From Macrostomum lignano (taxonomy: Eukaryota): a DNA stretch of 64,000 nucleotides. Below, piece by piece: positions 6,255 through 31,150 of this stretch. The stretch's first letter is position 1. Every line of letters starts with the position of its first letter. The stretch covers positions 62,001-126,000 of the forward strand of contig NIVC01000860.1 in NCBI GenBank assembly GCA_002269645.1, given 5' to 3'. The position numbers were made by a program, and so were the translations under genes. The notes under the pieces are model-generated. The model did no database searches. It was not told where the DNA came from and saw only the letters and a list, made by a program, of their open reading frames with translations.

Positions 6255-6584
6255 TCACTGCTTGCACACAGCGGCCAGCAGGGCCAGAGCCGCGGTCAGA
6301 AGGAGGCCGCTGGGACCGAACTGCCTCGGCGAGGAGTTGCACAGGTCGGTGTTGCAGCACCAGGTGTTGGTGCTTTCCACGCAGGCAGCGACAGCAGAGC
6401 GGCCAATGACGCCAGCCACATCCGTCTTCATGCAGTAGGTGCCGCTGGCTGTCGCGGTGCTGCTGGACACGGTGCTGCAGGCGGCGCAGAAGTAGCAGTT
6501 GACGGCGTCGGCCGGGGCGGGCAGAAGGCAGGCGACGACCAGGAGGCCGAGAGTGGCCAGACGGAGCACTTGCTGACGCTGCAT
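6255..6584 (-). CDS. Ly6/uPAR (three-finger) GPI-anchored protein, copy 1 (109 aa, intronless)
   Basis: Signal peptide MQRQQVLRLATLGLLVVACLLPAPADA, LU domain CYFCAAC...CCNTDLCN, hydrophobic GPI signal. TATA-like TATTTAAG about 100 bp upstream on minus. Confidence 0.9.
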   Translation of the reverse strand: MQRQQVLRLATLGLLVVACLLPAPADAVNCYFCAACSTVSSSTATASGTYCMKTDVAGVIGRSAVAACVESTNTWCCNTDLCNSSPRQFGPSGLLLTAALALLAAVCKQ

Positions 6585-7214
6585 GCTGATGGCAGGTGAT
6601 GCGTTGCTGAAACTGGGGGCTGCTTGAGGCGGTGTGTTGAGTTCTGAGCTGGCTGAGGCCGCTCCGCTCCGGCGCTCCGACTTAAATAGACGCGAGCGGC
6701 GCCACCCCACGCAGCTCTCCGCCCCAACTCCCGTTGCTAGGCCAAGAACTCCTGCTATATAGAAGTCTGGAGTAGTGAAGTCTCGAAGAGTTCAACCGCA
6801 TCGTATACAATTACAGCGTCATGGCTGGTACACATATTCATAGAATTAAAAATTCAACTCTGATTTGCGATACAATTTTCATGAATATCAAGTTGCATAT
6901 TGTGACAATCGTGCACTTGTGAATGTTCGCACAGCTGCTGTTTCCAGACTTTCATGCATTTAGATGTCCTTTTCTTCTCTCATCTCCCCTAATCCCCGTG
7001 GGTTCTCCTATGCGTTGTCATGACGACTTAAAGACCAACCAATTTTCTCTATGCCTAACTCATGGACTTGAACTCTTGGCTTTTGTCATGAATTTTTTGT
7101 CTCCTACTTCGTCTACGTTTCAGCCATCGTCTGCATGCTCACCCTTTCATTCCATTTTCATTCTATTAAGAGCTTCTATCTAATCTACTCTACTCTGCTC
7201 TACTCTACTGTATC

Positions 7215-7935
7215 CTATCTACCACAGGCTGCCCTATCTACCACAGCCTACCATATCTACCACAGCCTACTATATCTACCACAGCCTACCATATCTACCA
7301 CAGGCTGCCCTGTCTACCACAGCCTACCCTATCTACCACAGCCTACACTATCTACCACAGCCTACCCTATCTACCACAGACTACACTATCTACCACAGCC
7401 TACACTATCTACCACAGCCTACACTATCTACCACAGCCTACCCTATCTACCACAGACTACACTATCTACCACAGCCTACCCTATCTACCACAGACTACAC
7501 TATCTACCACAGCCTACACTATCTACCACGGACTACACTCTCTACCACAGCCTACCCTATCTACCACAGACTACACTATCTACCACAGCCTACCATATCT
7601 CTACCACAGCCTATCCTATCTACCACAGCCTACACTATCTACCACAGCCTACACTATCTACCACAGCCTACCCTATCTACCACAGCCTACACTATCTACC
7701 ACAGCCTACCCTATCTACCACAGACTACACTATCTACCACAGCCTACACTATCTACCACAGACTACACTATCTACCACAGCCTACACTATCTACCACAGC
7801 CTACCCTATCTACCACAGACTACACTATCTACCACAGCCTACCCTATCTACCACAGACTACACTATCTACCACAGCCTACACTATCTACCACAGCCTACC
7901 ATATCTCTACCACAGCCTAGCCTATGTACCACAGC
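7215..7935. repeat. 19-bp minisatellite (CTACCACAGCCTACCCTAT)n
   Basis: Dozens of tandem copies; same family at 10328-10760. Confidence 0.95.
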
Positions 7936-8829
7936 AGGAATTCGAATCTAAAACCACTTCATTCAACGCATCAAAAGTGCTCCAGCGGCCTTTTGATGCG
8001 TTAAAAAAGTATCTATATCCAGACTTGATAATTTTATACTATACCTTCTTCTACCTACTGGCAGTCCGCGCAGCCACGCACAATGGGGGGCAGTGGCTCA
8101 AGCGTTATCATTAACTCACAATAACTCATCGCACTCCACCCACGTTCTTATAGAAACAAATTTTAATGAAAAAGAGATGAAGAAAAAGTACCTCGTATGC
8201 AATTTTTAGCACATCTTATAATAGAATTAAAGAAAACTAATTTTATCCCAAGCTTTGCTATTGTGCTCACACCACCAAGGAGAGAATTAAGGAGCCAGCA
8301 CACAGAGAAGAGATGGGGGCAGCCTCCTTCAACTCAAGATGCTTGCCAGCCGATGGGTCAGCAACCCCAGACTGGCTGAGACGCAATACGCCCGCAGAAG
8401 AAGACACGGAGGGTCAGCAAGCGGCTAAAGTTTAAATAGATTTGTCCCTTCTCTCGCATTCTCAACAATTTAACACAGCCTGTCATACAAATTAAAACTC
8501 TTGCGACGCATAGCAACAGTCTAAAAATATCACTAGTTGCCTGAGTGTGAATTTCCATTGCTTAAGAAAACTCTTGCGTTGCTAAGCACGCCAGCTAGCA
8601 GGCAAGATACTGCTGTTCGTTATTGTCAAGATTTTAACCTGTTCTCTTAGAAACTAAATTTATAATATGAGTAAACTGTAATTTTATTTGTCTCTAATAA
8701 ACTCCGATTTTGGATTGGAAAGTCATTACTGGAAAATATGAGCATTGGGGCACTGACTCTGGGGTAATCGCTAAGCGATCCATGAGTTATCTACTACATC
8801 TACCATTAGCTAACACATCTAAATGTAAC

Positions 8830-9700
8830 ACAGCTATTACATCTACCTTGACTATACCACATCTACCCTAAGTATACCACAACTATTGCATTGACTTTAG
8901 CTACCACATCTACAGTACCTTAACTACCACATCTACCTTAACTACCACATCTACCTTAGTTACCACATCTACCTTAGCTACCACATCTACCTTAACTACC
9001 ACATCTACCTTAGCTACCACATCTACCTTAGCTACCACATCTACCTTAGCTACCACATCAACTTAGCTACCACATCTACCTTAGCTACCACATCTACCTT
9101 AGCTACCACACCTACCTTAACTACCACACCTACAGTACCTTAGCTACCACATCTACCTTAACTACCACACCTTCCTTAACTACCACACCTAGCTTAGCTA
9201 CCACACCTACAGTACCTTAACTACCAAACCTACCTTAACTACCACACCTACAGTACCTTAGCTACCACATCTACCTTAACTACCAAACCTACCTTAACTA
9301 CCACACCTAGCTTAGCTACCACACCTACAGTACCTTAACTACCAAACCTACCTTAACTACCACACCTACCTTAGCTACCACATCTACCTTAACTACCACA
9401 CCTACAGTACCTTAGCTACCACATCTACCTTAACTACCACACCTACAGTACCTTAGCTACCACATCTACCTTAACTACCACACTTACAGTACCTTAGCTA
9501 CCACATCTACCTTAACTACCACACCTACAGTACCTTAGCTACCACATCTACCTTAACTACCACACCTACAGTACCTTAGCTACCACACCTACCTTAACTA
9601 TCGCACCTACCTTAACTACCACACCTAGCTTAGCTACCACACCTACAGTACCTTAACTACCACATCTACCATTAGCTAACACATTTGCATCTACCTCAGC
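8830..9700. repeat. 18-bp minisatellite (CTACCACATCTACCTTAG/A)n
   Basis: Tandem copies with CAGTA insert variants; related array at 26330-26640. Confidence 0.95.
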
Positions 9701-9809
9701 TATTGCATCTACTCAATTCCATGTTGCTTAAGTATATAACAAGCATTGCCTCACGGGCCTTCGTTTTGATTTTTTTTGACATAATGCGCTTTTAACATAC
9801 CGCTTCTAT

Positions 9810-10120
9810 ATATACCACATCTATATATACCACATCAACATTAACTATACCACATCTACATTAACTATACCACATCTACATTAACTATATCACATCTACT
9901 TTAACTATACCACATCTACATTAACTATACCACATCTACATTAACTATACCACATCTACATTAACTATATCACATCTACTTTAACTATACCACATCTACA
10001 TTAACTATACCACATCTACATTAACTATACCACATCTACATTAACTATACCACATCTACATTAACTATACCACATCTACATTAACTATATCACATCTACT
10101 TTAACTATACCACCTACCAC
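9810..10120. repeat. 20-bp minisatellite (CTATACCACATCTACATTAA)n
   Basis: About 14 near-identical tandem copies. Confidence 0.95.
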
Positions 10121-10205
10121 CACCACCACCTACCAATGTCATGCAGTTAGTCAAATGAAACAGTGATCGTGAATGTGGAGAGGCCGGGACTCAAAAGACT
10201 GCTGC

Positions 10206-10219
10206 GTTGTCATGGAAAC
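10206..10219. promoter_or_regulatory. RFX X-box consensus match
   Basis: GTTGTCATGGAAAC fits GTHNYYATRRNAAC exactly; target gene unclear. Confidence 0.35.
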
Positions 10220-10327
10220 AAAAAGGGAGGTGGGCTGGAGGCGAGCAGCAGCTGCTTCACGGAACCGGTTCAAGTGCCTTGCAGTGGACTCTTTGCTATG
10301 GTACAATGGCACAGGGTATCCCATACT

Positions 10328-10789
10328 GTCTGCCACAGCCTACCCTATCTACCACAGCCTACCCTATCTACCACAGCCTACCCTATCTACCACAGCCTAC
10401 CCTATATACCACAGCCTACCCTATCTACCACCGCCTACTGTATCTGCCACAGCCTACCCTATCTACCACAGCCTACCCTATCTACCACAGCCTACCCTAT
10501 CTACCACAGCCTACCCTATCTACCACAGCCTACCCTATCTACCATAGCCTACCCTATGTACCACAGCCTACCCTATCTACCACAACCTACCCTATCTACC
10601 ACAGCCTACCCTATCTACCACAGACTACACTATCTACCACAGCCTATCCTATCTACCACAGACTACCCTATCTACCACAGCCTACCCTATCTACCACAGC
10701 CTACCCTATCTACCACAGCCAACTTTATCTACCACAGCTTACCCATCTACTACAGGTAGGCTACCCACAGATAGGGTAGGCTGTGGCAG
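10328..10789. repeat. 19-bp minisatellite closed by one inverted unit (TIR-like)
   Basis: CTGCCACAGCCTACCCTATCT at 10328-10348; exact reverse complement AGATAGGGTAGGCTGTGGCAG at 10769-10789. Confidence 0.85.
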
Positions 10790-11381
10790 GGTAATGCTGT
10801 GTACAAATAACCATTGAAGCGTAGAATAAGTTGAAGCGTAGCCTTATACAGCCTACTCTTAGTACTAGCCTGCGAATGCTGGTGATGCAGTTTTAAGTCA
10901 TACGAGTGTATGCCGCATACACTGATCTGTGCTTAGGTCTATGGAGGTGACAACGAGAAATCGGTAGAGCTCAGTGCAACGCATTTGTGGTCCATTAGTT
11001 AATATTGCAAGCACATGCCTTAAGTACAGAAGCAAAGTTCGCTAATGATTCTGCAAGGGTCAGAAAGTCTGTGAAATAATTAAGTTTGTATTTTGCGAGC
11101 TGGTTATTATCGAAATAATAGTTATTATGTTGGTATATTTGAGTTGGGTGGGAAAACTGGCATATTAAGGATTACCGCTAGATCATGGCTACAATATATA
11201 TTGAATATACCTTTTTAACACAAGGAATTATGGTTTTTACTACTTCAAATTCATAAAGTGAGTGGTTAAGCAAAAGTCGTCTAGTCAAATAAATCTAATA
11301 GAGTTTCCAGTTCAATCAATCCAGCTCGATCTTCTCCAGCAGCAGACTATGCGCAGCAGTTCTCGGTGGCTGCGGCGGCCG

Positions 11382-11711
11382 TCACTGCTTGCACACGGCG
11401 GCCAGCAGGGCCAGAGCCGCGGTCAGCAGGAGGCCGCTGGGACCGAACTGCCTCGGCGAGGAGTTGCACAGGTCGGTGTTGCAGCACCAGGTGTTGCTGC
11501 TTTCCACGCAGGCAGAGGCAGCCGAGCGGCCGATGACGCCAGCCACATCAGCCTTGACGCAGTAGGTGCCGCTGGCTGTCGCGGTGCTGCTGGACACGGT
11601 GCTGCAGGCGGCGCAGAAGTAGCAGTTGACGGCGTCGGCCGGGGCGGGCAGAAGGCAGACGGCGACCAGGAGGCCGAGAGTGGCCAGACGGAGCACTTGC
11701 TGACGCTGCAT
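11382..11711 (-). CDS. Ly6/uPAR GPI-anchored protein, copy 2 (109 aa)
   Basis: Near-identical to copy 1; flanks also homologous (10855-11880 vs about 5030-6780), indicating tandem segmental duplication. Confidence 0.9.
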   Translation of the reverse strand: MQRQQVLRLATLGLLVAVCLLPAPADAVNCYFCAACSTVSSSTATASGTYCVKADVAGVIGRSAASACVESSNTWCCNTDLCNSSPRQFGPSGLLLTAALALLAAVCKQ

Positions 11712-12304
11712 GCTGACGGCAGGTGATGCTTTGCTGAAACTGGGGGCTGCTTGAGGCGGTGTGTTGAGTCTGAGCTGGTTGAGGCCGCTCCGCTCCGGCG
11801 CTCCGACTTAAATAGACGCGAGCGGCGCCACCCCAGGCAGCCCTCCGCCCCAACCCCCTGTCACCCTGGCCAGGTCTTCCTGCTGATATAGAAGTCAAGG
11901 ACTACTGTACTTAACAACTCAGGACATTACGCTCGCCAATGAAAGAAATTCTAGAAAAGGCCGATTGCTTTAGCTGTATCGGTGGCTTTTCAATAAGCTT
12001 CTTTGATAAAGAAGTAAGCTAACCTATCTAGGGATAAATGCTTATAAAACTTTCGTGCTACGAGTGTATAATTTATTTTTTTTTCAATTTAGAAATAATA
12101 CGTACAAATATAGTCAGCAAAACATCTTTGCCGAATGGTATAGCCAACAAGTGAATGCAATTAGTCATGGTTTATCATAGACGTTAAAGCACTTTATATA
12201 AAAATGTTTGGTGGATCAGTCAGCGTACAGAAAATCATGCATTATTGCACGCTGGCGACTGAAGCGTCAATCAGCATGCAGACAATGAGGCACTAAAGAC
12301 GGCT

Positions 12305-12735
12305 GGGAGTGTAGCAATCATGGATAAAGGAATAGGAAGGATCGCTCATCCGAAAGCGAGTCTATGGCCAAAAGCTCCTAAAAATTAGGATATTCCCCTC
12401 CATGAATTTCATTGGCTAATGGAATTTAATAATAGTACCCCTTTAAGTTCTTAATGGCTGAAGCTTGTACGCGGGGGAATGCTAAATTTCTTTCCCTTAA
12501 GCCGTCGTGGCCCAGAGGAAGAAAGCAGTTAAAGATGTCTAACATTAATTTGACTGGAATTTCCCTTGCGTACGAGCTTCAGCCATTAAGAACTTAGGCT
12601 GGGACTATTATTGAATTCCATCAGCCAATGAAATTCATGGGGGGGAATATCCCAATTTTTATGAGCTTTTGGCCATAGACTCGCTTTCAGATGAGCGATC
12701 CTTTCTATTCCTTCATCCATGGTAGCAACGCTCAT
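12305..12735. repeat. Long imperfect inverted repeat (about 175-bp arms, about 80-bp spacer); foldback/MITE-like
   Basis: 12305-12480 is the reverse complement of about 12562-12735 with scattered mismatches (e.g. GCGAGTCTATGGCCAAAAGCTC vs GAGCTTTTGGCCATAGACTCGC). Confidence 0.9.
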
Positions 12736-13215
12736 AACACGAGTGTCTATGGGCGTGGTTACACACGTAGTTACATTGTTTTCCTGTCCGTGCAACAATG
12801 CCATCTTTAATTTTTTTCTTATTTTTGCGTTTTGTCTATGGTAGCGTTCAGTGCCGTTCCGGGGGTGTGCAGCACGGACGATACAATTCTTCGATATGTT
12901 CTACCTTGTAGTCAGTGAGTTTGTCGTTTCCCGTCCCGAGATCGAGTAGTCCCTGGCCTACTATATCTACCACAGTTCAGTTGTGTCTGGAGGTTACCAC
13001 GTGGAAGCAGTAAACATTGATGACTTACTTGACTCAGCTGCAGGGGGCTCCGTGCATCCGGATGCAGCGAGCGTTGCCGCTCATTTCGCTAATCCCTGGC
13101 GACCACGGGCAGCTGGTGCTGCGGTGTCGCACAGGGAGATCCAGTAGTGTCGGTGTCCGCAGCGCGGTCCCCTCCGGAGAGTCCAGGAGGTGGACGGTCG
13201 CTTGCCCGGTAGCCC

Positions 13216-15289: not shown

Positions 15290-15510
15290 TTTGTGACCAA
15301 GCAGGGGGCCCATTGGTGGAAATGAACAATTTATTTCCTTGAGCAAGACACTTAACTCTGCATTGCTTCAGTTCACCCAGCTGTAAAATGGGTGCCAGCA
15401 TAAGCTGGGGTAATTGAGGGTGTGTGTGGCGACACCCCAGTCCTTGGACTGAACAGCCGTACGCAGCCTTCAGATGCGCCGCGCAATGGCTGCGGCTGAG
15501 CTGGCCAAAT
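15290..15510 (+). mobile_element. SINE, family 1 (head degenerate)
   Basis: CCTTGAGCAAGACACTTAACTC...CACCCAGCTGTAAAATGGGTGCCAG resembles conserved metazoan SINE central domains; homologous to the inverted copy at 16870-17100. Confidence 0.75.
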
Positions 15511-15535
15511 TGGGGAAGTGGTAATCCATTATTAT

Positions 15536-17985: not shown

Positions 17986-18315
17986 TCACTGCTTGCACAC
18001 AGCGGCCAGCAGGGCCAGAGCCGCGGTCAGAACGAGGCCGCTGGGACCGAACTGCCTCGGCGAGGAGTTGCACAGGTCGGTGGTGCAGCACGAGGTGATG
18101 CTGGATTCCACGCAGGTACTGGAAGCGGAGCGGGTGATGATGCCAGCCGTGTCAGCCTTGACGCAGTAGGTGCCAGTGTTTGTTGGGGTGCTGCTGGAGA
18201 CGGTGCTGCAGGCGACGCAGACGTAGCAGTTGACGGCGTCGGCCGGGGTGGGCAGAAGGCAGACGGCGACCAGGAGGCCGAGAGTGGCCAGGCGGAGCAC
18301 TTGCTGACGCTGCAT
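17986..18315 (-). CDS. Ly6/uPAR GPI-anchored protein, copy 3 (109 aa, divergent loops)
   Basis: Same leader, GPI tail and Cys spacing as copies 1-2; many substitutions in the LU domain; homologous promoter. Confidence 0.9.
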   Translation of the reverse strand: MQRQQVLRLATLGLLVAVCLLPTPADAVNCYVCVACSTVSSSTPTNTGTYCVKADTAGIITRSASSTCVESSITSCCTTDLCNSSPRQFGPSGLVLTAALALLAAVCKQ

Positions 18316-19216
18316 GCTGATGGCAGGTGATGCTTTGCTGAAACTGGGGGCTGCTTGAGGCGGTGTGTTGAGTCTGAGCTGTTTGAAGCCGCTCCGCTCC
18401 GGCGCTCCGACTTAAATAGACGCGAGCGGCGCCACCCCACACAGCTCTCCGCCGCAGACCCCGTTGCTAGGCCAGCGAGTTCTGCAAATATAGAAGCCTG
18501 GAGTTGTGTTTTCTCAAGTTACACAATTATGGAGAAAGAATCAAACTACGGTAGAAAATGGTTAGCAAAAATTGTATGAATCGATTCCTCAGATTCCACC
18601 ACAGGAGTGACAACTGTTGGCACACAAAATGCCAGTGTTGTCGTGCGTTGTTTTTTCCGCACACTTACCGACGGTTAAAGAAGAAGACGTCTGAAGACGT
18701 TTCGTAGTTTCATAACAGTACACATGATAGTACATGATACGTACACCATACATGATCCATGCTTTTTCAACAGTCAAGATTAAAAATTTAACAAAATACT
18801 TGCTTGCAAACTGAACCTTTTCAAAGACAGAAAGATTAGCTAACGTGATGAACTCATAAGCTCTCTTCTCAAGCATTTTCCTACAGCCACTCTCTTTACT
18901 TCTATCACTTTGTACCTGTGTCTACATTTGCAAATTTATGTCTACATGAAACTTGCACAGCACTGCGCCAACCCGCCCGAGTCCCTGCTTATTTTCAAAG
19001 GGATGAAACACGTCTTTGTTTCTTAGAAAATATTTGAATTCCGGCTTACTCGTGAATTTATTGCGCAACAGGGATAGAAACATCTCGTAGTTTGTAGCTG
19101 GTATAGATAGCCTGTTTCCACTGGAAGCAGATCCAGTGCAAATCTTTTAATATGACTTAATATGATTTATTTACAAATATATATAGTGAAATTAGCTGGT
19201 ATAATACTTATATAAT

Positions 19217-19786: not shown

Positions 19787-19798
19787 TTCTTCTTCTTC
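19697..19798. repeat. (CAT)n then (TTC)n microsatellite at the LINE 3' end
   Basis: About 30 CAT units (one CGT), then 4 TTC units. Confidence 0.95.
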
Positions 19799-22700
19799 TG
19801 TCCTTTTATCGCCGGGGGGGCGTGGACACGGGCACGTTTATTGAGAGGTGCAGGTACGTCTGTGTCTGGCCATGTTGGTCTTGGCCAGGAGTCTGCCGCA
19901 GCTGGGGCACGGTGCTCTCGTGCTGCGGTAGATCCTCGCGCCCAGTTCTTCCACTCTCGCCGGTTGCTCTGGCAGGTGGGCCTGGACTCTCGTTGGTCCG
20001 CAGGTTTTGCGGTGCCGCGCGAAATTCGACTTGCTCAGCCAGCTCCCGCATTGGGCGCACAGGACGAGGCCTCCAGCTTGCTTTTCTCCCTGGCATCGTT
20101 TCTGGTGGTTTTTCCTGGTTGCTTCTGAGGTGAACGTGGTCAAGCAAATTGGGCATGGTAGCTGCACTCTTTCGAAGATGTGGTGCATGCGCCTCTGGTG
20201 GATCGCCAGTCCTCCTCTTGACGCGCAGGTCTTAGTACACCCCTCGTAGCGGCAGCGGTAACCCGTTAGCTCGGATTCGCCCTGCCCGTCCTCTTCTGGC
20301 GGGGTCTCACTTGCCTCTGGTTGTCGCTTTTTTCTTTTGGCCTTCTCCTCCCGGTCCAGTTCTCTTTCGCGTTTCTTTATTCGTTCTTTCCATGCAGTCC
20401 GGTCCGCCACCATCCTCTCGAGGTCTAGCTCGTCGATCTTCGCCCCGCGGAGCATCTTCTTCCAATATGAGACGATCGTCTGCTTCCGTTTCTTGGCTTT
20501 TCGGATGCCCTCCAAGGTCTTATTCCAGCCTAGAATGCACGTCTTAGCTAGGTTCGAGTCGGGTAGGCGGAGCACGTGGCCCATACGCCTCCAGTGCGCT
20601 GCTTCAATTTTGTTGCTGATACTCTTGATGCCGAGTTCTGCGCGCACGTCCCACATATTGACTCCCTTCTCTTCCATTTCTATGAGCGGTGGTCTTGTCT
20701 TCGCGCTCCAGACGTATCTGTACTTTCTGTCCATTGTTTGCTGCATTCTCTTGACCTCGGATTTCTGGAAGGGTCTCGCTCCGGCGTTAAACAGCATGGT
20801 GCTTTCCACGCAGGCTTCGACAATGCGCGCTTGAGTGCGCTTGCTCAGCCGTGTGCGCCGGAGCATGTTCTTTGTTCCGTGCCATGCTTTGGCTGCTCGT
20901 TTCAGTCTTTGCGTCATATCCTGCTTCCTTCCCAGCCAGGTCCCGAGCATCCGGATGTTTCCGCTATCCTCGGTGCCTAGCGTAGCTCTTTCTTCTTTAT
21001 CGTCGTTTGTCCTTTCTTCAAGGTCTGCCATGGTCTCGATGATGACCCTCGTTCCCTGGTTGACCTCGGCTGCGGTCCCGATGACGGTGGTGTCGTCGGC
21101 GAACAATGAGCTCGTGATCTTGATTTCGACCGTCTCGTCGTTGCGGACACCAATTCTTTGCGGAGGTAGGCAGCTGCCTGGTCGGCGGACCCAGCGAATC
21201 CCGTGCACTTGTCCTGTTTCCTTCGCCAGAGTGGCTCGTCTCTCTTCAGCTAACCTCATGACTGCCTGGTGGAAGATATTAAAGAGTATTGGCGATGTGG
21301 CGCATCCTTCGCGGAGTCCCCGTTGCGGGTAAAACTCCGTGCTCCACTCATTATCACAAAGCACCTTGTACGCGGTAAATTCATGTAGGTCTTTAATCTT
21401 GTCAATCATCTTTTTCGGCATCCTGTAGTGCTCGAGGAGTTCCCACAGTAGTGGCTTGTTGACTCTCGGGTACGCTTTTCGGAGGTCAAGCAGGACGATG
21501 TTGGTGTCCGTTTCTGGGTCGTAATCCGGGCTCTCGCGGATTTTTTCGGCGTCCTCGTTCAAACGGAGGATGATTTGGGTCGCATCCATGGTGGATTGTC
21601 CTCGCCGGAAGCCAGCTTGATTTTCATCCATCAGTCCCAGCTTCTCCGCCCAGACGCTGAGTCTCGAGGCAATGATGCGTGCGATTATTCGGCTAAGGCA
21701 TGGGAGGAGGCAGACGCCGCGGAAATTATTCAGATTTGCTCTGTCTCCCTTTTTGTGAAGTGGTATGATGATCCCCACTTTTTGATCGTTTTCCCATGTA
21801 GATGCTGGATGTTTCCAGAGTCGCTGGATTTCCTGCTTTAGGACTACTTTTGCTTCGTCGCAGGCGTTCCTGATGTACCGTATTCTAAGATCGTCGACTC
21901 CTGGTGCTCCATCTTTGATTTTAGCAAGCTCCGTCTCTATCTCAGTGTCTTTCAGTTCACTGGCGAGATCCGCGTTTGCAATTTCAATCTCATTTACCGG
22001 TCTGCTCGTAGGGGGCATCCGGTGGACTAGGTGGAGCATTTCTTCTGGGTTGTTCTCGAAACGTTGGTCTTGGATTTTCGAGAGGTGGTTTTTAAACTCC
22101 TCCGCTGAGAAAAGCGGAGGATCTTGCTGTTATTGCTGTTCTGTGTGTCGCTTTTACCCATTCTCCTCAGGCAGTCATACATCCCTCCGGTGTTTCCACT
22201 GTCACAATGCCTTTTGCATTCTTCCGCGATTTCGGTCCACCAGCTCTCTTCCCATTCACGGAGCCTGTTTTTTTGTTGTTTTCTGATGGTTTTTAGGCGC
22301 TCTTCTGCCATTTGTACCCTGCTTACTCGCTCTGGTGTTTCTTGCTCGCGGAGCTGTCGTCGTGCGTTGTTCCTCTGTGCTAAGGCATCTTTTATCCCTT
22401 CGTTTATGTTTTTTAACTCTTCTTCGTGGCCAAACATCCAGCTGTTAGTCATTCTGGTTCTGATCCCGCAGACCTCCTTCGCTGCTTCTAGGAGCACTTC
22501 CCCGACTTCATTCCATTTGTTATTGTTTTCCTTTTCTGCTCCGTTCGCGTTCGCGTTCCTGAGTTTTTCCGTTGTCTTTTCTCGGTATTTTTCACGGGTT
22601 CGCGCGTCTCTCAGGTTTTCCCAAGCGATTGCCTGCTTTTTCGTTTTTGTGATGTAGCGTTTGGGGGGTGGCGCGCATTTCTCTATACTCTTTTTGTGGA

Positions 22701-23877
22701 AAGTGATCACCTTTGGGAGGTGGTCAGATAACTGCGGCTCGTGGTCTGTGCGGATTTTCTTTGCAATCCTGGGTCGTTGCTCCCTCTTCAGGATGAATCC
22801 GTCTAACTCGTACCAAACGCCTGATGCCGGGTTTTTCCAAGTCCCTTGTTTTTGTTGCGGGTAGAACGAGCTTGCCCACACCAGGTCCAGGCTTTCCAGC
22901 CAGATCAGGAGGTCCTCACCTTGTTGGTTTGTGCTCCCGCATCCAAATCTCCCTGCGCTGCTCAGGCCCACGGCATCTCTTCCGACGTTTGCGTTGAAGT
23001 CGCCTCCTATAACAGTCATTGCATTCTTCGCTGTGGTGCTGACTATGCGTTCGATTTCGGTCTTGATCGTCTCCAGCTCTTGCTCATAGTCCTGGCTTCC
23101 TTTCACTGGTTGGTAGACCGCGACTAGCACTATTTTGCCGATCTCCAGCGTTAGCGTCCTCTCTGATGGGTGCATTTTTCTGCCATCAGCGTTCCATAGT
23201 TCCCACGCTGTTTCACTGAGTAGGATCCCAACCTTGTGCGAGTGTATCAGAAAGGCATCTTTACCGATGGGGTGGTATTTTCGTATCCCGGTCGATTTCG
23301 TGTCCAGTTCCGTGATTAGTGTCACGTCCCAGTCTTTCCTTGCAGCGCATTTGATCATTTCGCCAAATCTTCCCGATCCTATATTTGCTCGTCTCGCGTT
23401 CCACGTGGCTACTCGGATCTCTGCTTCTTTCCACTTCTCTTCCGCTTTCTCGTGTTTCTTTTTCCTCTTTTCATCTTGCTTCCGTTTTCTCTTTGTCATC
23501 CGCCGTTTATTACGGGCCTTTCTTTGTTCCACATTCCTGGGTCCCGGGTTTTTTTCTACAGTCCTGAGCGCCAGAAAAATTTCGGTGCTTCTCCGCCGTC
23601 TCTCTTCTGCTCCGTCTTTTTTTGGTTTTTTTGATTTTTTCTCTTTTCCCTGTCTCCTCTGTCTCCTCTCTTTCCGTGTCCGTTTGGCCTTAATGTTGTT
23701 TATAGAGGTGCTCGGTTCGGTCATCTCCGGGCCGCTCTGTTGGAGGGAGGTTTGCCTACAGAACGCAGTTGTTAAACTGAGTCTGTAGGCCTCTCTCCCC
23801 CCCCGACTTCTTCTTTGCCAACCTGTTTCCAGGCTGCCCGCTTGGCACTGTCGAGAAAGTGAGAAGTCTGCGCCGGC
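19787..23877 (-). mobile_element. Near-intact non-LTR retrotransposon (APE-RT-zinc fingers, RTE-like architecture) within an (ATG)n tract
   Basis: APE motifs (VATWNAR, LITELD, VIGGDFNA, WYELDGF, SDHLP), RT motifs (FRGVCLL, QAGFR, LLDLRKAYP, GLREGC, LFADDT), four C-terminal Cys/His fingers; one frameshift near 22100; (GAA)n tail. Confidence 0.93.
19838..22109 (-). CDS. LINE reverse transcriptase plus C-terminal zinc fingers (-1 frame relative to APE)
   Basis: Frame is open from about 22109 (FSAEEFKNHLSKIQDQRFENNPEEMLHL) to the stop at 19838. Confidence 0.9.

Positions 23878-23913
<36 letters not shown>
22027..23913 (-). CDS. LINE APE endonuclease portion
   Basis: APE motifs as above, preceded by a basic RNA-binding-like region. 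True start uncertain: in-frame ATG array 23878-23913 or the MTEPST methionine. Confidence 0.85.
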
Positions 23914-23915
<2 letters not shown>

Positions 23916-23932
23916 GCATCATCATCGTCATC
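23878..23932. repeat. (CAT)n microsatellite at the LINE 5' end
   Basis: 12 perfect CAT units, then CAG/CGT-interrupted units. Confidence 0.95.
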
Positions 23933-24589
23933 TTCCAATCCGTATCCGAATCTCCATGTGACTCAAAAATCATTATAAATTTGAATTCCTTAAATTCACT
24001 TAATAAGGAAATTATAAATGAAAAGAAGAAATAAAGCAGGCAAGACATTAAAAGATTCAGAATAATTTCCTATAAATAAAAGTACAGCCGGTCTTTATAG
24101 TATTTCCTAAGAAGTAAAGTGCCCCGTTCTACTTATGCTGTTTAAGATTTTTCGTTGGTTGTTAGATAAAATAGCCAACTCATTTGTGCTTTATTGACCA
24201 TGAAAATAGCAAGTGATTGCAGAAGAGCCATGAGTTCAAAATTTCACGTAAGGGCCCGTGCAAATTTTGTATGCGAGTGGCTTGTCTATTGACTCTCTGC
24301 TTTGTGCTAGAAGCAGATTAGTAAATACCGCCAGTCTGCCGCTTAGTTGGCATGGAAACAGGGACGCCAGATCAATGCCCTCCATGAGTCCCCATTCGTT
24401 ATTTTTGTTTTATGACGTCTGCTCGACCTTTTTGGGCTTGGGTTGAGTTTAGCTCCACTCTCCTGCCTACAGATGCAACTGCTCAAAAATTGTACTGAGT
24501 GTTAGAGGGTTCCTTGGTGGTCACAATGACCTTTTGTAACCCCTTGTCCCCTGGTGGTCTGAATCTTTATCCTGTGGTCGTCACCATTT

Positions 24590-25600
24590 TCCTTTGGTGC
24601 GTTCCACTGTCTCTTGTTGGGTTCCACTGTCTCTTGTTGGCTTCCCCTGTATCTTGTTGGGTTCCACTGTCTCTTGTTGGGTTCCGCTGTCTCTTGTTGG
24701 GTTCCATTGTCTCTTGTTGGGTTCCACTGACTCTTGTTGGGTTCCACTGTCTCCTCTTGTTGGGTTCCACTGTCTCTTGTTGGGTTCCATTGTCTCTTGT
24801 TGGGTTCCACTGACTCTTGTTGGCTTCCCCTGTCTCTTGTTGGGTTCCACTGTCTCTTGTTGGGTTCCACTGTCTCTTGTTGGGTTCCACTGTCTCTTGT
24901 TGGGTTCCGCTGTCTCTTGTTGGGTTCCATTGTCTCTTGTTGGGTTCCACTGACTCTTGTTGGGTTCCACTGTCTCCTCTTGTTGGGTTCCACTGTCTCT
25001 TGTTGGGTTCCATTGTCTCTTGTTGGGTTCCACTGACTCTTGTTGGGTTCCACTGTCTCCTCTTGTTGGGTTCCACTGTCTCTTGTTGGGTTCCACTGTC
25101 TCTTGTTGGGTTCCACTGTCTCTTGTTGGGTTCCACTGTCTCCTCTTGTTGGGTTCCACTGTCTCGTCTTGTTGGGTTCCACTGTCTCTTGTTGGGTTCC
25201 GCTGTCTCTTGTTGGGTTCCACTGTCTCTTGTTGGGTTCCGCTGTCTCTTGTTGGGTTCCACTGTCTCTTGTTGGGTTCCGCTGTCTCTTGTTGGGTTCC
25301 ACTGTCTCTTGTTGGGTTCCACTGTCTCCTCTTGTTGGGTTCCACTGTCTCTTGTTGGGTTCCACTGTCTCTTGTTGGGTTCCACTGTCTCTTGTTGGGT
25401 TCCACTGACTCTTGTTGGGTTCCACTGACTCTTGTTGGGTTCCACTGTCTCTTGTTGGGTTCCACTGTCTCCTCTTGTTGGGTTCCACTGTCTCTTGTTG
25501 GGTTCCACTGTCTCTTGTTGGGTTCCACTGTCTCTTGTTGGGTTCCACTGACTCTTAGTGGATGCCACTGTCTCTTGTTGGGTTCCACTGTCTCTTGGTG
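24590..25600. repeat. 20-bp minisatellite (CTCTTGTTGGGTTCCACTGT)n
   Basis: About 50 tandem copies, some with a 3-nt insert. Confidence 0.97.
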
Positions 25601-26329
25601 GGTTGTGTGGTTGTTATATAGATTATCTCTTGAAGAGATGGCTAAATTAAAGTGATATCATTCTTTGGGTTTTCTGGCCTCGTTCGTTTTGTCTCTTTAG
25701 AGAGGCGATTGGGTGTGGCGAAGAGCTGATATCTTGATAGCTTTGTGAGCAGCAGTAACTAATTTCCACATGCAACTATAAACCTAACGCAAGACTATTG
25801 ACTCAAATATCAAGCTCAAACCACAGGAATATGCAATGCAAATAAGTCCTCCTCAAATGTGTGACGAAACAACCCAAGATGCTTGCCAACCAAGGGGTCG
25901 ACACTCAGCAACCACAGACTGGCTGAGTCACAGAGGGTCAGAAAGTGCCTGCAGTTTAAATAGATTTGCCTCTCCTCTCGCATTCGTTTAAAACAGCCAA
26001 TAAATTTGTCTTATGCTTAACCAACTCAAAACCTTCCTACTTGACAACAGGCTAAAATTACGAAGTATACGAATTTACATTGCTTAAGAAAACCCTTGCG
26101 TTGCTAAGAACGCGAGCCAACACGCAAAAGGCTAGGCTTGTACAAAGTGAATTTATGATATGACTAAATTTTATTTTCATTTGTCTTAATGGAACTCATT
26201 ATTCAAGTCGTTGTTATTCAACAATATGAGCACTGTGCACTGAGTGTGTAGTAATCAACATCATATCGATGTGTCATGTACTACATCTACTATATAGCCA
26301 ACACATTATCATCAACACTGCAGCTACTT

Positions 26330-26640
26330 TAGCTACGGCATCCGACTTAGCTACCATATCTACCTTAGCTACCATATCTACCTTAGCTACCATATCTACC
26401 TTAGCTACCATATCTACCTTAGCTACCATATCTACCTTAGCTACTATATCTACCTTAACTACCATATCTACCTTAGCTACCATATCTACCTTAGCTACCA
26501 TATCTACCTTAGCTACCATATCTACCTTAGCTACCATATCTACCTTAGCTACCATATCTACCTTATCTAACACTTCTATTTTAGCTACTATACCCCATCT
26601 ACCTTCACTAACAAATCTACCTTAGCTACCACATCTACTT
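26330..26640. repeat. 18-bp minisatellite (CTACCATATCTACCTTAG)n
   Basis: Tandem copies; related to 8830-9700. Confidence 0.95.
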
Positions 26641-27102
26641 TAACTATCACATCCAGTTGCGGTGTATTAAAGTTTGTTTCTTCTTTTTAAAAAGACAGAA
26701 TTTTCGCTAAAATATTAAGGGCTTCTTTGACTTTGTTAATTGAATGCCAAAATTGATATTTAAACGGGATAGACGATCTGCTACATAAGGAATATTGCCA
26801 GCCAGTATATTGAAACCAGTGTTTATTTTTATTGTTCAATAAGTTTCTGAAAAATTCGCAGTAAACCAGTTGCGTCACGCTTATTAGTGGTGCAAAATTG
26901 GCCAAAGTACAAATTGCTTGCACTGAGAGAGAAACTATTAAACTTATTCGAAGTGTTTAAATAAAGAAAACACAGAAGAACAGCCTGACTAATCAAATCA
27001 GGTATTTCCCTTAGAGAACAAGTGAACAAAGAGTTTTGAGTTTATCAACCCGACTCGGTCTTCTTCGGTCTCGGCAGCAGTTCTCGGTGGCTGCGGCGGC
27101 CG

Positions 27103-27432
27103 TCACTGCTTGCACACAGCGGCCAGCAGGGCCAGAGCCGCGGTCAGAACGAGGCCGCTGGGACCGAACTGCCTCGGCGAGGAGTTGCACAGGTCGGTGT
27201 TGCAGCACCAGGTGTTGCTGGATTCCACGCAGGCAGAGGCAGCCGAGCGGCCGATGACGCCAGCCACATCAGCCTTGACGCAGTAGGTGCCGCTGACTGT
27301 CTCGGTGCTGCTGGAGACGGTGCTGCAGGCGGTGCAGAAGTAGCAGTTGACGGCGTCGGCCGGGGCGGGCAGAAGGCAGGCGGCGACCAGGAGGCCGAGA
27401 GTGGCCAGACGGAGCACTTGCTGACGCTGCAT
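27103..27432 (-). CDS. Ly6/uPAR GPI-anchored protein, copy 4 (109 aa)
   Basis: CDS near-identical to copy 2; unrelated upstream region with its own TATATAAA at about 27521-27528. Confidence 0.9.
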   Translation of the reverse strand: MQRQQVLRLATLGLLVAACLLPAPADAVNCYFCTACSTVSSSTETVSGTYCVKADVAGVIGRSAASACVESSNTWCCNTDLCNSSPRQFGPSGLVLTAALALLAAVCKQ

Positions 27433-28199
27433 GCTGGCTGAAGTTGCGGTTTGGATAAAGACTGACAACAAGTTCTTCTCAAGCTGAAAGATGCTGAACT
27501 TTCGGTTCGCGGGTCTCTGTTTATATAGTCAGGCGGAGGCTGCCCAGAAGACTGGCAGAAGACGATTGATTTTTGATCGGGCAAGGCAGATCGATGTGCC
27601 AGCAGAGTTAGAGCTGCTGCCTGTGGAGAAACGCTCCACAGGCAGCTCCACAACTCCATCAAGTGGAACCCCCCGTCGCTTTCCTGCATGATGGGGTTTT
27701 CTACGCCCAAGTCATTAACTTTGCAAGTAGAGCAAGAGTATTTCTCTACCATTGTTCAGAGTCAAATATGCATCTTGAGTTGCTCTCAGGGAATCCAATT
27801 CCTCTTTGGCATTCTAAGACTGCAGAAGTGCAACGAAGCGTTGGGCCAGTTTCCCCAGCCAGTATTGCTGGGTGATCTGCATTGTTTATCGTGGCAGCTG
27901 AGGCGTTGCTCCAGATGGGAGCTTTTTCATGGGCCATCGGTCTCGCTTTCCTGGTTATGGAGACTTTTTTACCATGTTAATTGATCTGTGAAATACTCTT
28001 CAGTTGATGAGACTAGTTGGCTCGGTAGGCAATTAAAATATCGTGGGTCGTGCCACAAAATGCAAGGACTGAAAGTGGCTGATTAACAATAATTATATAG
28101 TCCGACTAAAGATGAAATCGATGTACGATGTTTAATTATTGACAAGTAATTATTGTACTTCTACTTGTCAAAGTATTTCTTTGTAAATTCGTAAAAACG

Positions 28200-28345
28200 G
28201 GAGACAGGGGGGGCCACCAAGAGACAGGGGCGCCTACCAAGAGACAGGGGGGCCCACTAAGAGACAGGGGCGCCCACCAAGAGACAGGGGCGCCCACCAA
28301 GAGACAGGGGCGCCCACCAAGACACAGGGGCGCCCACCAAGACTT
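28200..28345. repeat. 20-bp minisatellite (GAGACAGGGGCGCCCACCAA)n
   Basis: About 7 copies; reverse complement of the 42940-44560 unit. Confidence 0.9.
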
Positions 28346-28584
28346 TTTCAGTCCCTCATCCGCAGCGACTCAGCGCACCTCAGCCAGTCAACCATTGTGG
28401 ATGATTTTGCAATGGTATCATGTCTTGGATTTCGCCAGCTTATTTCGCCAGCGTCTGTAAACAGACGTGTTAACATAGGAGGCGCCATCGCTTTAAAAGC
28501 CAGAATATTCAAACGGCTTTTGTTTTTACATTTTACGAACTTTTTTTGGTAACATTACAAAACGTTTCGCATGCGATGCGGTTT

Positions 28585-28662
28585 TATAGTATTGATAGTA
28601 TAGTAGATTTCGTGTTATAGTATTGATAGTATAGTAGATTTCGTGTTATAGTATTGATAGTA
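28585..28662. repeat. 31-bp tandem repeat (about 2.5 copies)
   Basis: TATAGTATTGATAGTATAGTAGATTTCGTGT repeated. Confidence 0.8.
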
Positions 28663-28697
28663 GTGTGAAGGTGAAGACATCGTAGGGCTGAGGGCTA

Positions 28698-29210
28698 TGA
28701 GTTTATCAGGAGTGTCAGTTTATCAGGAGTGTCAGTTTATCAGGGTTGTGAGTTTATCAGGGGTGTGAGTTTATCAGGAGTGTCAGTTTATCAGGGTTGT
28801 GAGTTTATCAGGGGTGTCAGTTTATCAGGGGTGTCAGTTTATCAGGGGTGTGAGTTTATCAGGGGTGTCAGTTTATCAGGGGTGTCAGTTTATCAGGGGT
28901 GGGAGTTTATCAGGGGTGTGAGTTTATCAGGGGTGTGAGTTTATCAGGGGTGTGAGTTTATCAGGGGTGTGAGTTTATCAGGGGTGTGAGTTTATCAGGG
29001 GTGTGAGTTTATCAGGGGTGTGAGTTTATCAGGGGTGTGAGTTTATCAGGGGTGTGAGTTTATCAGGGGTGTGAGTTTATCAGGGGTGTGAGTTTATCAG
29101 GGGTGTGAGTTTATCAGGGGTGTTAGTTTATCAGGGGTGTGAGTTTATCAGGGGTGTGAGTTTATCAGGGGTGTGAGTTTATCAGGGGTGTGAGTTTATC
29201 AGGGGTGTGA
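28698..29210. repeat. 16/17-bp minisatellite (GAGTTTATCAGGGGTGT)n
   Basis: About 30 tandem copies. Confidence 0.95.
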
Positions 29211-29311
29211 CAGCACGATAGCTGTGAGGGTTTGAAGATGAGCTGATGTTTTAGGCAGGATTTGGGGATTTGTCAATCATTTGCCTTCGTCACCGCAGCC
29301 GGTCCGCGCCG

Positions 29312-29645
29312 TCACCCAGCCGCAATACTTAGCGTCATCCTCATCAGCAGCACCAGCGCCAGCGGCAGCAGCGTCGCCGACCGGACTGCCGAGACTGCCG
29401 AGTTGCAGAAGTCAGTATGGCAGCAGAAGGACTCCGGGCTGGCCACGCACGCCTCCGAGGCGAAGCGAGACACCACATTGTTGGTGGTGAGCTTGACACA
29501 CCAGGCACCCTGCTGGGAGCCCATCTGGGACAAGCTGAGCCCGTCACAGTTTGAGCAGGAGTAGCAGCTCACCGTAGCAGACAGGACCAGCTCAGGTGCT
29601 AGGAGCAAAAAAAATAGTTGGGAATAAAATTCTCAACTGAAGCAT
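29312..29645 (-). CDS. Ly6/uPAR GPI-anchored protein, copy 5 (divergent; 1-nt frameshift in the signal peptide)
   Basis: CYSCSNC...CCHTDFCN plus GPI tail. ATG at 29645 reads MLQLRILFPTIF and joins LLLAPELVLS if one base is removed from the A8 run at 29607-29614. TATAAAG upstream at about 29704-29710. Confidence 0.8.
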
Positions 29646-30109
29646 CTCAGCTTTGACGGGCTTTGCCGGTTCTGCTCAAAAAATGAGATTTGGTAAGAGA
29701 CTGAGATCTTCTCTTTATAGCTCTGTCACTGTTTTCGCTGGATGAAATGCTTTTTCTCCGTATTATATTTTAGCAACCAACCGAAGCCATCTGCAGCTAG
29801 CTAATTGATTTCCCTCATTTTAGGCATTTCAAAGCCATTCCTCAGTAACAATGTACCCCCCCCCATTCTGCTCTCTATTGTCTGCTGATTTGCTTCTAGC
29901 AAAGCTCAAATTATTGTCTCTCTGCGACAGCATACACTTGTTGTTATGGATTGCCTCTGAAAAATATCTCAAACATCGCAGCTAACTACTAATACGCGCT
30001 CGTAACAATACACGGAGAGACAGAGGTTTTCCTTTGTAACTCTATAGTAGGAAATATTGGTTACAGAGCAGGTTCCTCATAACTCGAAGAGCTGATATTT
30101 AGCCCCACT

Positions 30110-30432
30110 CTCTGCCCCAGTGCTACGTACACCAACCCCACTCCCTGCCCCAGTGCTACACCAACCCCACTCCCTGCCCCAGTGCTACACCAACCCCATT
30201 CCCTTTCCCAGTGCTACACCAACCCAACTCTCTACCCAGTGCTACACCAACCCCACTCCCTGCCCCAGTGCTACACCAACCCGATTCCCTTTCCCAGTGC
30301 TACACCAACCCAACTCTCTACCCAGTGCTACACCAACCCCACTCCCTGCCCCAGTGCTACACCAACCCCACTCCCTGTGTCAGTGCTACACCAACCCCAC
30401 TCTCTACCCAGTGCTACACCAACCCCACTCCC
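30110..30432. repeat. 28/29-bp minisatellite (CAGTGCTACACCAACCCCACTCCCTGCCC)n
   Basis: About 11 tandem copies. Confidence 0.93.
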
Positions 30433-30820
30433 TTCCTCAGTCTTCCTATTTTCTTACTCAATAATAGAGATGATGGAGTAAGATGATCATGAATGAGTAA
30501 GGCTTCAATGAAGAAAGTTTTCGCTAAAACAAGATGTTATTAAGACTCTCGAAGTCTTGCCCTCAGTTGCCCAATAAAAAATAGTTTTTAGAATTTTTTC
30601 TTTTTCCAATGGAACTTACTCGTTTTTAGGACCCATTTTTAACGAAAATATTAATAGTGCTCAAACAATAATACAAGAGGTAATACTTTTTACCATATTA
30701 AAAACTACAAGCACCTGCCTGTGCATACAAGGTATACGGACGCTCTTTAACACAAAAAGATAACAAAGCGTTAGGCCGTGCCACTAAATTATGGTCACCA
30801 CGACGCTGTTATCTCGCACG

Positions 30821-31150
30821 TCAGCCACTGAAGCCAAGAATGAAAGCCACAGTAGCAACCGCTATAGTCAGCATCAGCTGGACACTCGATCTGCCAACGG
30901 TAGGCGCAGCTTCGTTGCACAAGTCGGTGCTGCAGCAGACGGTTGTGGAACTTGGCGCGCAGGTTGGCACAGCGGCCCTGTTCACTGTGCTACCGTAGGT
31001 GGACTTCTGGCACACGGAGTTTGTGGCGGTCAGCGTGCTGGAGGACACGGTGGCGCAGTCTGCGCAGCTGTAGCATTTCACAGCTGTGGTAGAGGATGTC
31101 AGCAGAGCCAGCGTCAGAAACGACACGATAACTAACACACCAAGCTGCAT
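30821..31150 (-). CDS. Ly6/uPAR GPI-anchored protein, copy 6 (109 aa, divergent)
   Basis: Signal peptide, CYSCADC...CCSTDLCN with the same spacing as copy 1, hydrophobic tail. Confidence 0.9.
   Translation of the reverse strand: MQLGVLVIVSFLTLALLTSSTTAVKCYSCADCATVSSSTLTATNSVCQKSTYGSTVNRAAVPTCAPSSTTVCCSTDLCNEAAPTVGRSSVQLMLTIAVATVAFILGFSG

Follow-up and report, generated by a model that had tools for sequence, protein, structure and literature searches.

The stretch of DNA analysed here, referred to as the window, comprises 64,000 nucleotides of the flatworm Macrostomum lignano (assembly GCA_002269645.1, contig NIVC01000860.1, positions 62,001 to 126,000 of the forward strand). Between its positions 6,255 and 31,150 lies a tandem array of six single-exon genes encoding small proteins with an eight-cysteine domain, designated copies 1 to 6 (Table 1). 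A six-frame regular-expression scan of the window with the pattern C-x2-C-x2-C-x14/15-C-x16-C-x7-CC-x4-CN returned exactly six matches, each of them on the minus strand, where by a rough estimate about 1e-5 matches per 64 kb would be expected by chance; tblastn searches with family members across the 64 kb found no additional copies or fragments. The cysteines are spaced 2-2-14-16-7-0-4 in five of the six copies, copy 5 having 15 residues in place of 14, and the domain measures 54-55 residues from the first cysteine to the final asparagine. Copies 1-4 and 6 are unbroken ATG-to-stop open reading frames (ORFs) of 109 codons each. Copy 1 has its conserved start at the ATG at 6584; as listed, the ORF 6255-6710 is over-extended from a GTG codon. 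Antisense ORFs overlie each copy (e.g. 6078-6599 and 11262-11726 on the plus strand) and were judged to be by-products of a GC-rich coding strand, because both the cysteine conservation and the homologues from another phylum track the minus-strand frame.

The array consists of three divergent subtypes, namely copies 1-4, copy 5 and copy 6, of which the latter two are old paralogues. It extends past the window, as a seventh copy (P0001, NIVC01000860.1:41869-42258), 98% identical to copy 2 and carrying the loop-I variant TDKAS, is located about 20 kb upstream of the window start. A homeologous contig, NIVC01001655.1, has a matching gene order, in which a polycystin channel gene is followed by copy 6, copy 5 and a degenerate copy-4-like sequence, and other paralogues or homeologues were found on at least five more contigs. 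The original prediction of an expanded family of eight-cysteine domains, six of them on one strand of the window, is therefore borne out both by the scan and by these additional members.

All intact copies (1-4 and 6) begin with a hydrophobic stretch (maximum Kyte-Doolittle hydropathy of 2.9-3.1 over 10 residues) with small residues ahead of the likely cleavage site (…PAPADA before VNC, …SSTTA before VKC), and end in a tail composed of small residues, a short polar spacer and 12-18 hydrophobic residues (Kyte-Doolittle 2.6 over 12 residues). Judged from such features alone, a signal peptide and a glycosylphosphatidylinositol (GPI) signal fit five of the six copies as well as the intact homeologue of copy 5. 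As to the domain itself, all six copies start with V/A-x-C-Y-x-C, in line with the L/V-x-C1-x-x-C2 start motif of Ly6/uPAR (LU) domains, and 47 aligned relatives all keep the CxxC spacing; the CCxxxxCN end motif appears among the six copies as CCNTDLCN, CCTTDLCN, CCHTDFCN and CCSTDLCN. Loop I, which corresponds to finger I of the three-finger fold, is 14 residues long, and Ser/Thr make up 57-64% of it in all copies but one. The eight cysteines, a lysine after C5, an arginine before the position of the lost C6 (numbering of the canonical ten cysteines, see below) and CCxTDLCN form a scaffold that is invariant across the flatworm paralogues and the rotifer relatives described below.

A signal peptide had been ascribed to all six proteins, which holds for copies 1-4 and 6 but not for copy 5, as the latter is frame-broken in the signal-peptide region. 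The ORF of copy 5 (29312-29608) contains no in-frame ATG; an ATG at 29645-29643 lies one base out of frame, and the frame breaks within a run of eight thymines at about 29610-29617. The homeologue of copy 5 on NIVC01001655.1 is intact and has a normal signal peptide, encoding MLQLRILFPAIYLLLAPELVLSA ahead of KVNCYSC…, and the two differ by a one-base indel in the T-run. Consequently, copy 5 as assembled is either a pseudogene or a homopolymer error of the long-read assembly. Frameshifted relatives on other contigs (L005 14709-14732 and the protein P0006) switch, inside the domain or behind it, to one common alternative frame (…SSVPAAS…); they represent either copies in decay or homopolymer errors that recur in the assembly.

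Homology of the family was traced through intermediates. The profile built from the window copies and their M. lignano paralogues matched eight-cysteine proteins of bdelloid rotifers at E = 2.9e-7. An exhaustive HMMER search over 1.84 billion representative sequences yielded 20 proteins at E <= 0.001; these came from M. lignano and bdelloid rotifers wherever a source name was retrieved, except for one unnamed metatranscriptome sequence. The rotifer eight-cysteine proteins in turn exceed the Pfam cut-offs for Toxin_TOLIP (P0009, 22.9 bits against a cut-off of 21.2) and Toxin_cobra-type (P0052). Among 47 aligned family members, 20 matched CD59, 17 Toxin_TOLIP and 6 QVR at E <= 0.1, mostly under the curated Pfam cut-offs. 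A profile restricted to eight-cysteine sequences, 28 from the flatworm and the rotifers (profile A8), matched the solved three-finger proteins haditoxin (8.5e-7), PSCA (1.6e-4), three-finger toxin 3b (1.2e-3), SLURP-1 (1.9e-3) and candoxin (2.2e-3). Furthermore, a ten-cysteine LU domain of M. lignano itself (P0033) matched every window copy at 1e-7 to 1e-11, and close relatives, including P0007, the 98%-identical homeologue of copy 6, are automatically named 'UPAR/Ly6 domain-containing protein' in UniRef. Owing to the rotifer, A8 and P0033 links, homology of these proteins to the Ly6/uPAR/three-finger superfamily is well supported at the sequence level. Two other assignments were rejected: a metal-binding reading of CxxCxxC, because the LIM and zinc-finger matches cover the CxxC motif only, and the 'two-finger toxin' or Argos-like fold (PMC12236594), which belongs to a different family with no link to the window sequences.

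To identify the missing disulphide bridge, the window proteins were compared with canonical LU domains, in which the pairs are 3-26, 6-13, 19-39, 45-63 and 64-69 in CD59 numbering (PMC4839075). The bridges Db1, Db2 and Db4 have been called strictly conserved (PMC7053344), and a rule requiring at least B1, B2 and B4 to be present has been cited (PMC3812095). In the alignments, NCTYC and SRQCLSAC of the ten-cysteine relatives stand opposite SGTYC and GRSAASAC of the window proteins, and the 'RxC' position reads RSA in copies 1-4, RFA in copy 5 and RAA in copy 6. HMMER alignments to PSCA (KGCSLNC), SLURP-1 and haditoxin (RGCTFTC) gave an equal register, and the C5-to-C7 spacing is 16 residues both in the eight-cysteine proteins and in ten-cysteine proteins of the flatworm type. 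These registers, together with the shared spacing, support C4-C6, i.e. Db2 (Cys19-Cys39 of CD59), as the pair that was lost: C4 is replaced by G/S/T/N and C6 by A in every member of the subfamily from M. lignano and the rotifers, the six copies included. The cysteines of the other bridges are kept, so that the remaining pairs would be C1-C5 (Db1), C2-C3 (Db1a, the CxxC mini-loop), C7-C8 (Db3) and C9-C10 (Db4). Hence, two central claims of the original prediction, that these are three-finger/Ly6 proteins and that they lack the 4-6 pair, with RSA, RFA or RAA at 'RxC', agree with our results: the former through the rotifer proteins, profile A8 and P0033, with moderate support from the structural models, and the latter through the aligned ten-cysteine relatives and solved structures.

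Table 1. Features of the window (positions counted from its first letter).
Feature	Position	Strand	Remarks
Copy 1	6255..6584	-	domain 6336-6497; 109-residue Ly6-like product; 93.6% amino-acid identity to copy 2
Copy 2	11382..11711	-	domain 11463-11624; 109-residue Ly6-like product; query that found the M. lignano paralogues
Copy 3	17986..18315	-	domain 18067-18228; 109 residues; most diverged among copies 1-4, 86% amino-acid identity to copy 2
Copy 4	27103..27432	-	domain 27184-27345; 109 residues; coding sequence 95% identical to copy 2 in amino acids
Copy 5	29312..29645	-	domain 29402-29566; divergent paralogue, ~41% identity to copy 2; frame broken as assembled
Copy 6	30821..31150	-	domain 30914-31075; 109 residues; divergent paralogue, ~46% domain identity to copy 2
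TATA-like box TATTTAAG	6681..6688	-	104 nt upstream of copy 1 ATG
TATA-like box TATTTAAG	11807..11814	-	103 nt upstream of copy 2 ATG
TATA-like box TATTTAAG	18411..18418	-	103 nt upstream of copy 3 ATG
TATA box TATATAAA	27520..27527	-	95 nt upstream of copy 4 ATG; promoter unlike copies 1-3
TATAAAGA box	29712-29719	-	-74 relative to copy 5 ATG
Minisatellite arrays	7215-7935, 8897-9684, 9826-10113, 10329-10755		units of 17-20 bp, also 29 bp
Minisatellite arrays	24594-25604, 26346-26646, 28698-29210, 30103-30441		in spacers
Non-LTR retrotransposon	19838-24048	-	between copies 3 and 4
Polycystin-2-like channel exons	36029-40016	-	directly upstream of copy 6
Annexin exon	47762-48544	-	PF00191, E = 3e-39
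Otopetrin-like ORF	55866-57392	+	multi-pass membrane protein; PF03189, E = 2e-13
AT-rich block	60027-63946		to window end; three long intronless ORFs

Structural modelling with AlphaFold had been suggested as a check of the fold. For the copy 6 domain, for which a deeper alignment was available, the model reached a predicted local distance difference test score (pLDDT) of 76.5 and a predicted TM-score (pTM) of 0.58 and showed strands at residues 24-30, 33-39 and 48-51. A Foldseek search of the PDB with this model gave 18 matches, 17 of them three-finger proteins (WTX, cardiotoxin, SLURP-2, bucandin, mambalgin, CD59, GPIHBP1 and short neurotoxins), the query-normalised TM-scores being 0.63 to WTX and 0.64 to CD59. 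The copy 2 model retrieved mostly three-finger toxins and PSCA, all at E >= 1. In both models finger I, the segment between the third and the fourth cysteine, had the lowest confidence and formed no hairpin. Thus the check turned out favourable in the identity of the structures matched by copy 6, at TM-scores of up to 0.64, and unfavourable in the match E-values, the quality of the copy 2 model (given below) and finger I. The copy 6 model is consistent with a three-finger core; it is not proof of one.

The closest known relatives are uncharacterised bdelloid proteins, which contradict the supposition that the family is lineage-specific: an eight-cysteine topology of 2-2-18..22-16..20-11-0-4 is the norm among a large number of Adineta and Rotaria proteins. 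They come from Adineta vaga, A. ricciae, A. steineri, Rotaria socialis and R. sordida, include entries labelled 'unnamed protein product' in a CAF accession series, and some are automatically named 'Protein quiver' or 'Snake toxin/toxin-like domain-containing protein' in UniRef. Like the window proteins, they contain CxxCxxC, two single cysteines and CCxxxxCN, have neither C4 nor C6, possess a predicted signal peptide and a hydrophobic tail, and show 43-44% identity to copy 2; one subgroup (P0009-11, P0028) even has the loop-I motif CSSVSSST in common with them. The differences lie in longer loops (18-22/16-20/11 residues against 14/16/7), in a loop I that usually carries N-glycosylation sequons instead of the Ser/Thr run, and in the gene structure, as P0009 (Adineta steineri CAJOBB010001540.1) takes 481 nt for 120 codons and so has an intron. 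The second exon of P0009 spans loop II through the CCxxxxCN motif. The bdelloid protein P0018 differs further in having two such domains in tandem. The eight-cysteine topology in the two phyla may stem from common ancestry, convergence or transfer.

Among flatworms, the Ly6/CD59-like proteins of parasites (Schistosoma mansoni SmLy6A-K, the same set as SmCD59.1-7, and Sm29; Fasciola FhCD59/FgLy6) resemble the window proteins in having a single LU domain, a predicted signal peptide and a predicted GPI anchor, in the C1-xx-C2-xx-C3 start and the CCxxxxCN end, and in forming clustered, fast-diverging families (PMC3812095, PMC4492491, PMC8763315). However, they possess ten cysteines, with C4-xx-C5 and C6-xxx-C7, and belong to parasites, whereas the window proteins have a shorter domain in which C4-xx-C5 is reduced to C5 alone and C6-xxx-C7 to C7 alone, and M. 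lignano is a free-living macrostomid. The full ten-cysteine pattern does occur in M. lignano, in P0033. We obtained no direct significant sequence match between the window proteins and the Ly6 proteins of parasitic flatworms. Since censuses of flatworm Ly6 proteins demanded at least ten cysteines (PMC4492491, PMC8763315), eight-cysteine proteins such as these would have been excluded from them.

With canonical members of the superfamily (CD59, PSCA, SLURP-1, Lynx1, Quiver/Sleepless of Drosophila; PF00021, PF25152, PF17064) the window proteins have in common the LxCxxC and CCxxxxCN motifs, profile homology, a predicted GPI-type architecture and, according to the copy 6 model and its TM-score to CD59, the predicted fold. 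Unlike them, they lack the full set of ten cysteines and five disulphides, have a domain of 54 residues instead of about 70-80, and are encoded by intronless genes. Variants with eight cysteines and four disulphides in a three-finger scaffold are known as well, and demonstrate that the fold tolerates the loss of one bridge. Short-chain snake three-finger toxins have no Db1a, the 2-3 pair. The 7-8 pair, Db3, is absent from the first domains of uPAR, C4.4A, Haldisin, TEX101, CD177 and SmLy6D (PMC7053344, PMC6337849, PMC4492491). In those variants it is Db1a or Db3 that was lost, as opposed to Db2 in the window proteins, and the domains without Db3 are only the first ones of multi-domain proteins, as opposed to the single-domain window proteins. 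A different case is plethodontid modulating factor (PDB 2MHY), a salamander courtship pheromone whose cysteines are presumably rewired, rather than one pair simply being absent. It is small, hypervariable, belongs to the three-finger superfamily and contains eight cysteines, and gave a weak profile match (E = 0.35), but it is a secreted vertebrate protein, and we found no evidence of a specific relationship to the window proteins. Literature searches on Ly6 proteins of Macrostomum or rotifers returned nothing specific, nor did they reveal a paper describing a variant without Db2. This variant is real and, as far as the literature searched shows, undescribed; databases already label its close relatives UPAR/Ly6 automatically.

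Part of the array is covered by existing gene models. Copy 6 is identical to a single-exon gene model on NIVC01000860.1 in GCA_002269645.1 (Mlig_3_7), and copy 3 corresponds to the database protein P0003; P0001 and P0003 are gene models that include about 20 codons of translated 5' untranslated region. As the annotation of this assembly was built from RNA-seq-guided transcript assemblies (PMC5730564), the annotated copies (copy 3, copy 6 and the upstream P0001) have transcript support. The intronless state is unusual for M. lignano, given that its genes contain 4.9 introns on average (PMC5730564).

Among the recent copies, DNA divergence is greater in the mature domain than in most of the adjoining sequence. 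Copy 3 shares 82-86% of its DNA sequence with copies 1 and 2 in this region, compared with 93% in the 5' flank, 95-98% in the signal peptide and 96-99% in the C-terminal tail. The ratio of non-synonymous to synonymous substitution rates (dN/dS) of the mature domain, calculated for copy 3 against the other copies, was 1.0-1.6, with about 20 non-synonymous and 5 synonymous changes and all eight cysteines unchanged. Either diversifying selection or relaxed constraint would fit a family of surface recognition or modulator proteins.

From these results, we consider it probable that the array encodes GPI-type, single-exon LU proteins without Db2, which serve as surface binding modules and diversify in their mature domain. 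A hypothesis regarding the way in which such proteins might work may be outlined. By homology, Db2 would be unable to form; judging from the models and the composition, the central sheet of fingers II and III as well as the C-terminal knot would be kept; finger II, a tight 16-residue hairpin modelled with the highest confidence, may manage without the Db2 staple. Finger I would no longer be stapled to the core and would become a 14-residue Ser/Thr loop, probably flexible and O-glycosylated. The Ser/Thr-rich loop I of the flatworm proteins, together with the sequons of the rotifer ones, points to a flexible loop that bears glycans and was released when C4 was lost. By analogy with Ly6 proteins, the signal peptide would be cleaved and a GPI anchor attached, placing the 54-residue domain on the outer leaflet as a small binding module. 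Variable loop residues would presumably make the contact with a partner, be it a receptor, a channel or a ligand, whether in cis or in trans, and paralogues would vary in the mature domain with the promoter, signal peptide and anchor signal conserved. A role in ion-channel modulation or recognition is putative and is proposed by the same analogy. A polycystin-2-like channel gene adjoins copy 6 (PKD_channel, E = 1e-76; Polycystin_dom, E = 2e-48), and this neighbourhood is kept on NIVC01001655.1; its presence is not evidence for channel modulation or for a functional link. We also entertained a bolder scenario, which we regard as rather unlikely: LU domains without Db2 would constitute an old structural subclass common to macrostomids and bdelloids, through spiralian ancestry or transfer, with a free, glycosylated finger I held only by the CxxC mini-disulphide and with positively selected recognition paralogues (for gametes, mates or microbes) in a hermaphrodite under high sexual selection.

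A number of results weigh against our interpretation. No window protein passes a Pfam threshold alone, the best match in a scan of all six being CD59 for copy 6 at E = 0.02, and a profile built exclusively from M. lignano proteins found no significant match among PDB sequences (best E = 0.15), although all seven matches were three-finger toxins. AlphaFold2 modelled the copy 2 domain poorly (pLDDT 63, pTM 0.47), and the Foldseek E-values of the copy 6 model are all >= 0.7, which is common for so short a domain. Plethodontid modulating factor presumably is a three-finger protein with rewired disulphides. The cleavable signal peptide and the GPI-attachment-type signal are predictions made at the sequence level. 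In the database, no separate annotated protein was seen for copies 1, 2 or 4. The gene identifiers (Mlig028996, Mlig017753 and others) occur neither in the paper texts searched nor in the supplements of two M. lignano papers, and these searches yielded no expression pattern, phenotype or functional data. Finally, a dN/dS of about 1 on so few changes fits relaxed constraint as well as diversifying selection, the two being inseparable at such small substitution counts.

Some of these points could be taken to mean that the domain is not an LU homologue at all, but a small cysteine-rich domain that arose convergently, or a CxxCxxC module that binds metal, as the window proteins alone match nothing significantly in Pfam or the PDB and give weak, spurious LIM and zinc-finger matches through the CxxC motif. 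This is exceedingly improbable in view of the significant transitive links from the rotifer proteins to Pfam three-finger families and solved LU proteins, the direct similarity to a ten-cysteine LU domain of the same animal, the presence of both the LxCxxC start and the CCxxxxCN end, a fold-search list almost exclusively composed of three-finger proteins, and the secretory-pathway context. A subtler objection is that the eight cysteines might be rewired into a non-homologous connectivity, giving a new fold variant rather than a domain from which Db2 is missing. The low-confidence finger I without a beta hairpin in both models would agree with this, as would plethodontid modulating factor, assuming its pairing is indeed non-canonical. 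Modelling of the S. mansoni proteins likewise left a Cys6-Cys9 pair unresolved (PMC3812095). Nevertheless, six of the cysteines fall into the alignment columns of Db1, Db3 and Db4 in solved structures, the last two, only 2 residues apart, pair by elimination, and the copy 6 model superposes on CD59 and WTX with a TM-score of about 0.63, which makes rewiring quite improbable.

Accepting an LU domain without Db2, one may still ask whether the proteins stay on the cell surface and whether they function. They might be released as a toxin, an antimicrobial or adhesive peptide, or a pheromone, the hydrophobic C-terminus being a propeptide or a transmembrane stub. The 54-residue domain is within the size range of secreted snake three-finger toxins, many toxins are found among the best profile and fold matches, and families of secreted toxins or pheromones typically combine a fast-evolving mature domain with a conserved signal peptide. 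However, secreted three-finger proteins end soon after the CN motif, whereas every flatworm and rotifer member continues into a hydrophobic tail of 12-20 residues after small residues and a polar spacer, the classic layout of a GPI signal, so we hold release to be improbable. The notion that the genes are mostly decaying, non-functional duplicates which drift neutrally and tolerate an odd cysteine pattern draws on the mature-domain dN/dS of about 1 or higher, the broken frame of copy 5, the frameshifted copy-4-like remnant and P0006 on other contigs, the missing annotation of copies 1, 2 and 4, and a region rich in minisatellites with a retrotransposon in it. Yet five of the six ORFs are intact and transcript-based gene models exist; the scaffold residues are invariant across paralogues of 40-50% identity and rotifer proteins of about 30-45%; the promoter, TATA box, signal peptide and tail are conserved above the level of the 3' flank; and the eight-cysteine state is old, being common to a second phylum, and is not a recent defect. 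We regard general decay as improbable, and retain surface-anchored LU proteins without Db2 as the preferred reading.

If correct, this reading bears on what the three-finger scaffold requires. Mutation of a consensus disulphide in the single-domain proteins CD59, GPIHBP1 and kappa-bungarotoxin leads to misfolding (PMC7053344). The four core disulphides are regarded as essential, and the recognised natural exceptions are solely without the loop-I or the 7-8 bridge. Single-domain proteins from two phyla in which the 4-6 bridge is missing would reveal parts of the scaffold that are dispensable. A minimal three-finger version of 54 residues would be of use for structural and engineering work. Flatworm surveys restricted to proteins with at least ten cysteines have a blind spot and systematically miss such members. 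In M. lignano, for which transgenesis and RNA interference exist, the function of the genes is directly testable.

The flanking sequences of the genes differ between the copies. Copies 1-3 have a common unit of about 600 bp, consisting of about 185 bp of 5' flank, the coding sequence and about 100 bp of 3' flank, in which the 5' flank is 93-94% conserved. By contrast, the 5' flank of copy 4 is unrelated to that of copies 1-3 (39% identity), the homology stopping a few bases upstream of the ATG (27433-27650 compared with 11712-11896); downstream, it fades past the stop codon, about 30 nt of the 3' flank being common. This suggests either gene conversion limited to the coding sequence of copy 4 or a duplication that captured a new promoter. 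The spacers between the genes are 1.5-9 kb long and filled with 17-20-bp minisatellites, which might drive unequal crossing-over within the array. Some related minisatellite units recur across spacers, e.g. at 8.9-9.7 kb and 26.3-26.6 kb. The non-LTR retrotransposon between copies 3 and 4 contains endonuclease (PF14529) and reverse transcriptase (PF00078) ORFs. We rejected the possibility that the genes are cargo of a mobile element, since the conserved unit is only about 600 bp long and the retrotransposon is a separate insertion.

Other features of the window are located beyond the array (Table 1). In a piecewise Pfam scan, one ORF of the AT-rich block at the window end showed a double jelly-roll-like domain (PF21738, E = 2e-5) and another the Walker motif of an A32-like packaging ATPase (PF04665, E = 3.8e-6); the block resembles a portion of a Maverick/Polinton-type virus-like insertion. 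An annexin exon and an otopetrin-like ORF lie between the polycystin exons and this block.

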